DNA of 63,356 nt, filler included, from Lenisia limosa (Eukaryota; Protista; Breviatea): NCBI GenBank assembly GCA_001655205.1. It is 19 parts of 19 records of this genome, joined end to end, with 100 filler letters (N's around TTAATTAATTAA, not from the genome) between each part and the next. Parts side by side here need not be neighbours in the genome. Positions count along the whole stretch, not along the records: positions 27,829 to 32,280 come from LPNZ01002426.1; 18 more parts are not named here. The stretch is one strand, 5' to 3'. A program made the position numbers and the translations under genes. Positions within the stretch are counted from its first letter, which is position 1. Each line of letters opens with the position of its first letter. The notes beneath the pieces were generated by a model. The model had not been told where the DNA came from. It saw nothing but the letters and a program-made list of their open reading frames with translations, and made no database searches. Below are positions 27,829 to 32,380 of this stretch, in pieces.

Positions 27829-27945
27829 ATCTGGCCGAAGCCGTCCACACCATAAACAATGATAAAGTGATACCATCACATCACGTTGACCCAATCATTT
27901 GCTTAACATCTGAGCATACAGCTTTGTGCGTGCCTCCCCAGCATA
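27829..27945 (-). repeat. Repeat family B copy
   Basis: Reverse complement of (G)TATGCTGGGGAGGCACGCAGAAAGCTG...GCAAATGATTGGGT...GGTGTGGACGGCTTCGGCCAGAT. Confidence 0.8.
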
Positions 27946-28013
27946 TTCCAAGCACTTAATTTACAACCCTGTGCAATAGTAATTATGTCAACAAAATAAA
28001 AATACTATACGAT

Positions 28014-28113
28014 AAGGGCTTCACTTCACTTCGAAAAAAGACTGAATTTCTCGATAAATCCTCGAAAACTATCGATATTTTACCGGCCTTTTTCGAACCG
28101 AAGTGAAGCCCTA
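28014..28113. mobile_element. MITE family A, near-consensus copy
   Basis: 100 bp; TSD TATACGAT/TATACAAT. Confidence 0.92.
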
Positions 28114-28137
28114 TATACAATGAACAATTATGTATAC

Positions 28138-30710
28138 CTTCAACACCCCACTTCGCTACATCGTACTCCGCTAGAACCTAATAGAAGTCCGTACCCAAAT
28201 ATAATACATATGTTTCAGTTGTTTTGATGTATAGCATATTTTTAATGTTATCCGACAATTTGACTCCCCAGTACCCCAGTACAAAAGAATATTCATCCCT
28301 TTTCTAATTTTTAAATACACCGACTGGGATCAGTCTTGACCGATTTTCTTTATGATTTCCCACGGACAATTGGTCAAGACTTATCACGGTCACTATATTT
28401 ATATTGTATTGAAAAAAGCAAAAACAATCCCCAGAACCTTAAACAAGTTGTTAGCAGCCCCCTTTTCGCGGATCTCCTCGACCATCTGATTGATAACTCG
28501 TCCTTTCGCGCTACACTGGCCAAGAACACTGAAAATATCGACCTAATACTGTGTGAATCTAAGATCAAACCAGAGCTTCACTTCCGGTTCCTAAAACGGG
28601 GATATAATGTAGGTATTTATCGGGGAGTTATCGAGTTGTTACAACGTATAAGTAAGCTTTCACTTCGGTTCGGGAAAATATCGATAGTTTTCGGATTTAC
28701 CAAGAAATTCAGCCTATTTTCGAACCGAAGTGAAGCCCTAGTTACAACGTATAAGGGCCAAACAAAGGAAGTAGCACCCCTCCCTCCCAACAAAGTTAAA
28801 GTAGTGCTCAGCGATCATGGAGGTAGGAGAGTAACTCTTCATGAACTGTTTACCAGCAGTATTCATCTTCCTGGAATATCAATAGATTTTCCTTGAATAC
28901 TATTAAGAATAGTATAAAGACTCCGCGTTAAGTAAATTATCGATGGAATCGAGAAAAAAAAACAGAAAATATAGCTCATACGTCTTTTGGAACATAAAGT
29001 GACTCCAGCATATAAAACACACAAAAAAAAATTTTTAAAAAAAAATTAAGTGTACTCAGAAGGACCACAAAAAACACCCCAATTACTTCAGCATATCCAT
29101 GATGAACGAGAAGTGCTGAAACATGGTATTGTAATGGAGCTGAGTAGCCTTGGGCTTTTTGGAGTTTAGCGACTTCTTTATGGGATCCACGAAGAGCTGG
29201 AATGATGAGTCACAGAGCGGAATTAATTGCAAAAAGAGAAACATAAGAGGTCAACTACCGATTAGTTCAGAAGAATAACCAAACTTTTTGGTTCTACAAA
29301 GATATCCAAAACCATAGCAAAACTAACCTTGATACATTGCTTTGAGTCTTTGATGAAACATTCCTCCTTCATCTACACGATTAATAAATATGTTCTTCTC
29401 AACATGTTATCACTCCTCACCCCTCCATCTACATGTTGTTGATGTACATATGATATATGATATAATTACATGTACACATGTAAATAAAAAATAAGGTTGT
29501 ATCAGGACGAAACCGTATACACCATGACATACATTTATTCCTCCAATCATATCATCACTTCAAATTGCTGCATCACCGCCAGCCCCCCCCCCCCCNNNNN
29601 NNNNNNNNNNNNNNNNNNNNNNNNNNNNNNNNNNNNNNNNNNNNNNNNNNNNNNNNNNNNNNNNNNNNNNNNNNNNNNNNNNNNNNNNNNNNNNNNNNNN
29701 GGTTCTAAACACATTTGCAAAGATTGTTCAAATCAAGCATATTTATTAAGTTTCATACAATAAATTGGGCAATTAATTGTTTCATTCAAATTTCTCAACC
29801 AATTTATTCAAACAATTAATTGAATGAAAATCGGATCGCCCCAATGTACAAATCCTTGATTGATTCTTCAGAAATGAAATTTGTATCTGAAATATCTGGA
29901 ATATTGATAACATGACAAGACTTAACCACGGTCACTCTAGTTCAACATTGTTGAATCAGCGAATAAGCATGCCATAAAAAAATAAGTTGGGAGGGAGGTG
30001 ACCGTGGTGAGTCTCGTTATATTGTTCCAGGGCGGGATTACATCGTGATACAGTATGATAATTTGCATATCATATATTTATTCCTTGTATTTTTTTTCCT
30101 GGGAGTGGTTTTCTGATTATTTTACAGGAGATTTCTGGCCGGAAAACACTCGTTCGCTTCGCAAACTCGTGTTTTCCTCAACAAAAAACTCCGAGTAACA
30201 AAAGGAAGACAACCACGAGTAAAAAAATAAGCAGGGAATTCGACTGAAAAACACTTAAGTCGGGATTGCCCCAAGTTTTCCTGAAATAATACAGTATTCC
30301 GAGATTTCTACGGCCATCATAGAGAAAGATGAGAAATACATGACGGTTGTAGGAGTATTAGTGGTAAATATAAGGGCGTACTCTGCTGTAATCCGCCTTT
30401 CAGTGTGGTCCGTTGGTGAACACCAATCAGTTGAAGGAATTCGGGGAACCGACCCATCACCCTGCCTACGGAGCTTCTTGAGCTGATGAATGGCAAGAAA
30501 GCAGCGCATAACAGACTAAAGGATGTTAAATAAGGCAAGATTTCTAGGAATGTCGAACATTGCACAACCTCTTACCTGAAGACGGACAACCGCTGGTTCA
30601 TCCTCTTCGTCCATCATCTGAATACGTTAGTTAATCTAATAGCGCGGGGGCTATAGTCGTGGCCTGCTTACAATCATCATTTTTTTGGTTCTACGGTTAA
30701 AGACGGCCAT
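28138..30710 (-). CDS. IQ-motif protein with a probable RhoGEF (DH) domain, 5' part
   Basis: ATG at 30710. EPAVVRLQSVMRCFLAIHQLKKLRR is an IQ motif. Exons 29372-29328, 29196-29087, 28870-28792 and 28177-28138 give MKEECFIKDSKQCIKLFVDPIKKSL..., resembling the DH helix 1 pattern TE..YV.DL...F..PL. Confidence 0.55.
28318..28395. mobile_element. MITE family D copy (Tc1/mariner-like)
   Basis: Palindromic element CA(G/C)TGAC..GGATAAGTCTTGACCGATT...AATTGGTCAAGACTTATC..GTCACT with TA flanks. Confidence 0.75.
28653..28740. mobile_element. MITE family A copy flanked by a 15-bp direct repeat
   Basis: GTTACAACGTATAAG at 28638-28652 and 28741-28755. Confidence 0.85.
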
Positions 30711-31012
30711 TTTGGCGAAACTATCCGTAGATTCGGATTGTCGAACCCAATTGTTTTCAAACAGATCAAAAAAAGAGCTATCTGAAATTTTCTTCTTACA
30801 TAGGGATTAAGTTCGAGTATTGACTGACTAATAAAACTGCTGTTTTCGCTCTTTTTTGTGTCTCTGGCATTGTAGTAGCGTATATTAGTTGATATAAGTG
30901 GTTTTAGTGATATAGTTTATCAGATACACCCTTCCCCTAAAAGACGTTGATCGTATAAGGGCGTTTTAGCGGGACTAGAGTAGCGCATTAAAGATTTATA
31001 GATTGGGAAAAG
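30711..31012. promoter_or_regulatory. Putative bidirectional promoter region
   Basis: About 300 bp, repeat-free, between divergent ATGs at 30710 (-) and 31013 (+). Confidence 0.5.
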
Positions 31013-32256
31013 ATGATTTCTCAGTTCTTCTGTCTCTCAACTCGCGGAGACAAGATCTTGCAAAGAACTTGTAAGCCAGTACTTCTGACGCTCCATCTTA
31101 CTCGCCATTTGTAGTTAGAGAAGATTGTACAGCTAGTGCCTCGGACGTCTTCTTCCAGAAGGTTCAATACTCCGGAAACCAACATGAACCTGTCTTTGTT
31201 TGTGGGGTCACCATTTTCATCATGCTATGAAGCTTCTCAGTGCTTTAGCACTATAGTTCTATGATTTAATAATATAATGGCATAAAGGAGAGAGGAAACG
31301 GGCAAATATTGGTCTTGTAGTTTGATCTACGCATCACCATTTTGATATTTAAAAAGTGCTACTTTGCTGAATGTTGCAAATGTTTGAAGTAATGAAAGAG
31401 AGTGAATTGGTTTACTGAGCTATGGTGTGCTGTATAAGATGATCCCAGTCAGAGATTTTTTTTTGAGAGAAAAAGTGTATAATAGGGTTTTTTTTTAAAA
31501 AAATAACAACTTTCTTTCAAGTACTTTCCCCATCACAATCCAGCATCACATGGGGCTGAACTTCGCCTTTATTGTCCGTTCGTCGCTGTTTTTCGGCGTG
31601 GTAACTCCCTCAAATGACTCGCCCTTTAAGCTGCTCAAAGTTCTTGAGAGACTCACACAGGTCAGTGGGGAGACACGCAGAAAGCTGAGTTATTAGGCAA
31701 ATGATTGGGTGAATTAATATTATACTATAATCCAATACCTTGTATAAGCGTGATGGTGTGGACGGTTTTGGCCAAATACAAGCTTATTTTTTATTTCTCA
31801 TTGCTGTATATTTTAAGGAAGCGGTTTGGCTGAGAGCTTCAATTCGGTCTTCGGAGACTACTTATTCATGATATCATCATCGTTATATTTATTTAAGTTT
31901 GTCGATAATTGTACTGTTTTTGGTATTTACATAGATCATTGAAACTCGATTCAAACTAGGATCAGCTTCATTAAGAAATCCATTTTCAGACTCATGCATG
32001 ATATGATAACCAACATCTCAGCTCTTCCAGGACTACTTACTAACATTACTTTTTATTTCTCATTGCTCTCTACATATAATGATAACCAGACTATTTACTC
32101 ATGCATGATATGATAACCAGCATCTCAGCTCTTCCAGGACCACTTTACTCATGATAATCACCATTTCAGCTCTTCCGTGACTACTGTGGAGTGCTCAGTG
32201 AGGACGCTCTACGGTCGAACTTCATTCTGTGCTACGAGATCCTTGATGAGTGCATT
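31013..32256 (+). CDS. AP4M1: AP-4 complex subunit mu, N-terminal longin domain; exons 31013-31070, 31115-31197, 31544-31660, 32170-32256
   Basis: MISQFFCLSTRGDKILQRTFREDC...DVFFQKVQ...LLKVLERLTQLFRDYCGVLSEDALRSNFILCYEILDECI matches AP-4 mu (MISQFFVLSQRGD...KDYLGVLNEDSFRKNFVLVYELLDEVI). Confidence 0.92.
31666..31808 (+). repeat. Repeat family B, near-complete copy starting 5 nt after a donor
   Basis: TGGGGAGACACGCAGAAAGCTGAG..TTAGGCAAATGATTGGGTGAATTAATATTATACTATAATCCAATA...AAGCGTGATGGTGTGGACGG...TTTTTTATTTCTCATTGC. Fragments recur in most scaffolds. Confidence 0.9.
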
Positions 32257-32380
32257 GTGAGCTGCGCGGGGGGGGGGGGGNNNNNNNNNNNNNNNNNNNN
32301 NNNNNNNNNNNNNNNNNNNNNNNNTTAATTAATTAANNNNNNNNNNNNNNNNNNNNNNNNNNNNNNNNNNNNNNNNNNNN

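Follow-up and report, generated by a model that had tools for sequence, protein, structure and literature searches.

Larvacean tunicates, which are small-genome aquatic animals, offer a setting analogous to the case described here; MITE-driven expansion or creation of introns is reported for them (Naville et al. 2019; Henriet et al. 2019). Introners, short elements known from Micromonas, Aureococcus, fungi and dinoflagellates, create introns by carrying or co-opting splice sites, and the documented families include some that have neither inverted ends nor target duplications and no assigned mechanism (PMC9860276, PMC12130899). By the operational test of Gozashti et al. (PMC9860276; PMC12130899, section 12), the likeness between introner copies should reach both exon-intron borders and stop short of the exons, a filter meant to remove elements that entered older introns secondarily. 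For intronic transposable elements of mammals, selection that removes poly(A) and splice signals is the established source of the orientation bias (PMC3088655, PMC3517506). Poly(A) signals can indeed travel with such elements, as dog SINEs import AATAAA (PMC11699766). Here, we compare these systems with a repeat, B, that occupies an intron of an AP-4 mu gene in Lenisia limosa and that a preliminary description had likened to a mobile intron.

The window, i.e., the whole stretch of DNA analysed, comprises 63,356 nt including filler (GenBank assembly GCA_001655205.1). The piece examined within it (27829-32280, LPNZ01002426.1) is nuclear eukaryotic DNA of ~38% G+C, has an assembly gap of Ns at 29598-29700 and holds two genes head to head, an AP4M1-like gene on the plus strand and a second gene, gene 2, on the minus strand (Table 1). 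Record 3 of run X1, a contig of poly(A) RNA, covered the plus-strand AP4M1-like gene in four pieces and joined 31660 to 32170, so the intron holding B is removed from the mRNA by splicing. As CAG is common to both sides of the junction and leaves an ambiguity of 3 nt, the coding exons were set, from the ATG onwards, at the limits given in Table 1. The exon 3 peptide matched residues 50-87 of human AP-4 mu-1 (PDB 9u9i_M) with E = 0.0015, the exon 4 peptide aligned with mu-adaptin residues 90-116, and the two exons abut without a gap at consecutive mu-adaptin residues 88/89. The identity as a mu-adaptin came from the PDB search only; Pfam returned no match for the single-exon peptides. The interval 31661-32169 coincides exactly with a single, truly spliced intron in this AP-4 mu (AP4M1-like) gene. 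For relatives with which conservation of the intron position could be tested, the exon 3 peptide was compared with 1.84 billion representatives, which gave one spurious repeat protein, and a word search gave no candidate.

Table 1 Genes, B copies and tandem units in the piece examined; positions count along the whole window
Feature	Position	Strand	Remarks
AP4M1-like exon 1, coding part	31013-31070	+	from ATG; ends in phase 1; RNA contig 30952-31070; translation MISQFF... read from the sequence
AP4M1-like exon 2	31115-31197	+	RNA contig piece 31115-31197; preceding intron 1 is 44 nt
AP4M1-like exon 3	31544-31660	+	39 codons; RNA contig piece 31544-31657
AP4M1-like intron 3	31661-32169	+	509 nt, GT..AG, phase 0; skipped as a single unit in the RNA contig
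AP4M1-like exon 4	32170-32256	+	29 codons; RNA contig piece 32167-32257
B3	31666-31810	+	near full-length B without the first ~5 nt (TATGC); ~93% like the family majority over 31738-31775
B1	27829-27945	-	head intact, tail cut by the edge of the piece; in gene 2 intron of >609 nt; sense
B2	29466-29584	-	old, diverged B; head lost in assembly gap; in 1078-nt gene 2 intron; sense
B tail fragment	32042-32088	+	47 nt, 5'-truncated, sense; 11-bp direct repeat at 32031-32041 and 32089-32099
U-alpha	31848-31880	+	older, diverged unit copy; local alignment score 26 vs null maximum 22 (1000 shuffles), p < 0.001
U1	31990-32038	+	tandem unit with decoy acceptor TCTCAG/CTCTTCC
U2	32097-32145	+	tandem unit with decoy acceptor; 96% to U1
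U3	32146-32186	+	functional unit: last 24 nt of the intron, used acceptor 32168-32169, first 17 nt of exon 4
Gene 2 exons	30672-30752, 30578-30619, 30454-30543, 29331-29375, 29087-29196, ~28791-28870, 28438-28542	-	RNA record 2

B is a repeat of ~140-150 nt. In agreement with the preliminary description, an inverted-repeat search of the piece detected no terminal inverted repeats in it, and the head and tail motifs proposed there both recurred: the head, GGGGAGRCACGCAGAAAG, at 31667-31684 (plus strand) and 27922-27939 (minus strand), the tail at 31784-31804 and 32046-32066 (plus strand), each with a shuffling expectation of 0.00. A profile built from B copies and run on the piece returned three copies and nothing else, at 31662-31811 (plus strand), 29466-29584 (minus strand) and, cut by the edge, 27829-27943 (minus strand). 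In five DNA contigs, the likeness to B1 breaks off precisely at position 27945, which fixes the head of B itself as TATGCTGGGG (that is, TATGCTGGGGAG, as given before). The copies differ in age. B3 departs from the family majority at four sites within 31738-31775 and is thus a middle-aged copy, and B2 is far more diverged. Beyond the tail first given for B, B2 and the tail fragment have ~18 further bases (TACATRTAAT...) in common.

In the DNA run X2, the depth over B was 30,000-85,000 vs a single-copy baseline of ~38.7, and B variants were carried by dozens to more than 100 distinct DNA contigs (up to 82 per variant site). Being ~1,000-2,000 times the single-copy level, this depth corresponds to roughly one to two thousand B copies. 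B is a high-copy dispersed family: many similar copies lie at non-homologous places, as seen both in the depth and in the copies in two unrelated genes. Statements on the family as such draw on 4.4 kb of genome, with three copies and one fragment.

Searches for the affiliation of B gave negative results. B folds no more stably than its shuffles (z = +1.0), and no inverted repeat links its two ends, so B does not qualify as a MITE. Rfam searched over B with E up to 1 yielded no match; two sub-threshold microRNA-like hits fell elsewhere, on a MITE hairpin and an AT-rich stretch. Neither an RNA polymerase III head (tRNA-, 7SL- or 5S-like) nor a LINE-like tail was found on B. Among sequencing runs, B was found only in those of the same organism, and the viral contigs scanned for its head motif contained no match. 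Seven matches to the conserved 21-mer of B in JGI metagenome contigs were discarded as chance matches of 21-24 nt, the contigs having 53-71% G+C and being probably bacterial.

Within intron 3, likeness to B begins at 31666 (intron +6), i.e., 5 nt past the first base of the intron, exactly where the head had been placed relative to the AP4M1 donor. The five bases before this point read GTCAG vs TATGC in the head of B, while the 18 nt after it fit the head motif at 18 of 18 positions. Since GTCAG does not match TATGC, the donor of AP4M1 intron 3 is not that of B. The used acceptor lies 359 nt past the tail of B3, in a non-B tandem unit, so that B neither carries nor co-opts a splice site of this intron. 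In gene 2, the tail of B2 ends ~105 nt upstream of its acceptor at 29376/29377. The proposed position of B tails just upstream of acceptors is thus not borne out in the piece. The donor-like head, which had been taken as a sign of an introner, carries little weight, given that GT and a G at +5 are almost all that the 11 donors of the piece have in common. Moreover, the GTATG of B would already suit this local donor pattern, which leaves no reason for its being rewritten to GTCAG.

In none of the B copies in the piece does the likeness reach both exon-intron borders, and B1 and B2 lie deep within two long composite introns (>609 nt and 1078 nt) of gene 2, alongside other high-copy elements. The introner reading of B is therefore not supported at the AP4M1 locus. 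Instead, B3 has the look of a passenger, inserted into a short intron that was already there and contributing neither splice site. What holds of the term mobile intron is that B is mobile, resides in introns in sense orientation and sits in a host intron that is spliced; what does not hold is the role of an introner, with a donor and an acceptor foreign to B and no border-to-border copy in the piece. The proximity of B ends to splice sites follows from intron size. Where basic introns measure 30-50 nt, an insertion that spares the donor hexamer as well as the branch site and acceptor has to sit within a few bases of the donor. More generally, when introns are very short, geometry leads one to expect repeats beside splice sites, and such a position is no evidence of intron creation.

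The 3' two-thirds of intron 3 consist of a tandem array. Its unit of ~41-49 nt combines the 17 nt that open exon 4 with the last ~24 nt of the intron, and four copies of it are present, the first of which (U-alpha) probably marks a former acceptor ~38 nt after B3. A decoy acceptor is present in every unit upstream of the used one, and at least two of these decoys look intact (TCTCAG/CTCTTCC at 32021/32022 and 32128/32129). Their use would shift the frame into stop codons; the RNA contig uses the last acceptor only.

Between U1 and U2, the array is interrupted by the 47-nt B tail, which is flanked by GACTACTTACT and GACTATTTACT. This 11-bp repeat is identical at 10 of its 11 positions, a level equalled in 43 of 5000 shuffles (p ~0.009), and it duplicates exactly the native junction between one unit and the next. 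This suggests that the B tail is an independent, 5'-truncated insertion with a target-site duplication. We had also considered 31776-31882 and 32037-32165 as a single block duplication, a reading that was dropped since the 11-bp repeat favours a separate truncated B insertion into the array. No target-site duplication was found around B3. A probable 5'-truncated copy with a target-site duplication, as known from SINEs with their shared 3' end and duplications of 7-20 bp, occurs once in the piece, and this one case is a hint that B moves through an RNA intermediate. The acceptors of exon 5 in gene 2 and of exon 4 in AP4M1 resemble each other over 18 nt (89%), no more than chance would give in a region of such length.

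The reading that we favour, and consider reasonably probable, is that B is a high-copy, non-autonomous mobile repeat of no defined class, which inserted secondarily into a pre-existing AP4M1 intron and owes its sense bias to selection. The starting point would have been a minimal AP4M1 intron of ~37 nt. B3 would have inserted directly behind the bases of the 5' splice site, where it is now spliced out along with the intron. A segment of ~41 nt straddling the acceptor may then have been tandemly duplicated, leaving decoy acceptors and pseudo-exon starts within the intron, before a further B, truncated at its 5' end, would have entered the array and brought the total to 509 nt. Insertion of B may have been retroposon-like or SINE-like and RNA-mediated. 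The position of U-alpha ~38 nt past B3 implies that the intron before duplication would have measured ~187 nt (5 nt, B and ~32 nt). Subtracting B from this leaves ~37 nt; the repeat-free introns in the piece have 32, 44 and 52 nt. A broader rule, namely that every long intron in the piece holds a high-copy repeat, proved wrong, as introns of 134, 216 and 346 nt are at baseline depth.

Relative to the host gene, which is AP4M1 on the plus strand and gene 2 on the minus strand, all three B copies and the tail fragment lie in sense. This agrees with the sense orientation that had been described for most copies on either strand; four out of four is not significant alone (p = 0.06). Every tail-bearing copy (B3, B2 and the fragment) has AATAAA on the antisense strand of its tail. 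On the sense strand, AATAAA is absent from B3, B1 and the fragment, and one is present in B2. With B antisense to its host gene, the pre-mRNA would carry a poly(A) signal, which would truncate the transcript and lead to the loss of the copy, and a sense B would amount to a harmless pyrimidine run. The sense-only orientation would be best explained by selection against the antisense AATAAA. This also fits the fallback offered in the preliminary description, according to which B is kept only in the splice-compatible orientation.

Gene 2, in which B1 and B2 reside, runs off the left edge of the piece. Its exons 1-3 (81, 42 and 90 nt; 30454-30752) appear to be 5' UTR, as the frame opened by an ATG in exon 1 is closed by a TAA within exon 3, and the long open frame begins with the exon 4 ATG (29375). 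Exons 2 and 3 are separated by an intron of ~32-34 nt only. The transcript starts of gene 2 and AP4M1 are ~200 nt apart (30752 vs 30952), and the two genes probably share a bidirectional promoter.

Several other repeats are present in gene 2. Family A (28015-28113 and 28653-28740) is a MITE of ~90-100 nt with 24-nt terminal inverted repeats (AGGGCTTCACTTC...) and, at a DNA depth of 300,000-800,000 vs the baseline of 38.7, is far commoner than B. Contig joints put its end beside TA sites within B (31694/95 and 31743/44), which suggests TA as the insertion site of A and a younger age for A than for many B copies. Its hairpin accounts for a weak Rfam match to MIR319 (26 bits vs a gathering score of 54). 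The second copy of A is flanked by a perfect 15-nt direct repeat, GTTACAACGTATAAG (28638-28652 and 28741-28755); 15 nt is unusually long for the target-site duplication of a TA-inserter, and the repeat may be part of a larger composite one. A palindromic element at 28312-28401, with 37-nt arms that are 78% complementary, a 16-nt loop and a depth of ~7,500, belongs to another MITE-like high-copy family and shares a gene 2 intron with the first copy of A. A further repeat (30090-30180, bin depth ~2,200), which includes a short hairpin at 30141-30177, lies in the 1078-nt intron. Runs of C and G at contig ends, beside the N gap and the end of the piece (29585-29597 and 32269-32280), mask the head of B2 and are most likely sequencing or assembly artefacts.

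Could B3 itself have made the AP4M1 intron? In this case, B would be a true introner that landed in an uninterrupted exon between Q88 and L89, its GT head later changing from GTATGC to GTCAGT, with its pyrimidine tail in place and a nearby AG recruited as acceptor. The reconstructed ancestral intron (31661 to ~31847, 187 nt) would then be ~80% B and would fall within the 150-190 bp first given for B; it would be almost all B if a full-length B ran ~30 nt longer. That B starts at intron +6, that every copy is sense and that introner families without inverted ends or target duplications are documented would also be in line with such an origin. We nevertheless regard it as unlikely. The five donor nucleotides differ from the head of B, whereas the next 18 are perfect, and a GTATG that already fits the local donors was under no pressure to change. 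Between B and the former acceptor lie ~32 nt that are not B, and these cannot be remnants of the exon: as the mu-adaptin alignment has no gap at 88/89 and 37 nt do not make whole codons, the non-B flanks are not former coding sequence. The deep position of B1 and B2 in composite introns and the lack of any copy with likeness reaching both intron borders argue in the same direction. A role as an introner at the level of the whole family is likewise doubtful. Rather improbable is the fullest version, in which B, lacking inverted ends, would insert through an RNA intermediate in sense orientation only and would have made many introns, the AP4M1 intron being an old B-made one in which the donor bases changed by drift and tandem duplication reshaped the 3' part.

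The sense-only orientation could also stem from mechanism instead of selection, if B spread as RNA within excised introns, by reverse splicing or intron transposition. All four copies and fragments being sense would follow directly, and the 5'-truncated copy with its flanking repeat suggests an RNA intermediate. However, no complete intron ends on B, as the head of B1 reads ATATGC and a terminal AG occurs in no copy; B3 and the fragment lie within an intron and do not form one, and B has no stable fold. The fragment is flanked by an apparent target-site duplication, something that reverse splicing does not leave behind. Taken together, this makes spread at the RNA level very unlikely. Hardly any credence can be given to the view that the likeness reflects local gene or segment duplication at the locus and no mobile family at all. 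Intron 3 does hold local tandem duplications, but these would account neither for the depth of B and its many distinct variant contigs nor for copies in two unrelated genes on opposite strands. Secondary insertion of a mobile repeat into a pre-existing intron, as outlined above, thus remains our preferred reading.

The AP4M1 locus offers a stepwise picture of how a minimal intron could have grown more than tenfold, through B behind the donor, duplication of the acceptor and a second, truncated insertion. The antisense AATAAA provides a concrete and testable reason for the sense bias. If B were an introner after all, an element that makes introns strictly in sense orientation and has no inverted ends would be added to those known. 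Its host genome is apparently compact, with introns of 30-50 nt, and such an element would bear on the question of intron gain.

Compared with the introners of Micromonas, Aureococcus, fungi and dinoflagellates (PMC9860276, PMC12130899), B is likewise short, non-coding, high-copy, intronic and sense. It further resembles them in the GT-like start of the head in some copies and in its pyrimidine-rich 3' part, and inverted ends, absent from B, are also absent from some of the described families, which have no target duplications either. The difference lies in its relation to the introns themselves: here, no copy fills an intron between its two borders, at the AP4M1 locus both splice sites are foreign to B, and copies sit deep in composite introns. 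The larvacean tunicates may be seen as an analogous setting, with a likewise compact genome and basic introns of 30-50 nt, some of them inflated by abundant non-autonomous elements. The presence of a TA-inserting MITE (family A) alongside B in the same introns adds to the likeness. The difference is that B has no inverted ends and that the introns here are canonical GT-AG. Intronic SINE-like retroposons are similar to B in their size of ~150 nt, their thousands of copies and, judging by one putative case in B, the occurrence of a 5'-truncated copy that keeps the 3' end and has an 11-bp duplication. SINEs differ from B in that no tRNA-, 7SL- or 5S-like head was detected on it and that its tail is neither A-rich nor a simple repeat. 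As in the intronic retroposons of mammals (PMC3088655, PMC3517506), the poly(A) signal of B lies on one strand, and the surviving genic copies are those that hide it. The mammalian elements show an antisense bias, whereas the bias of B is towards sense because its AATAAA lies on the antisense strand.
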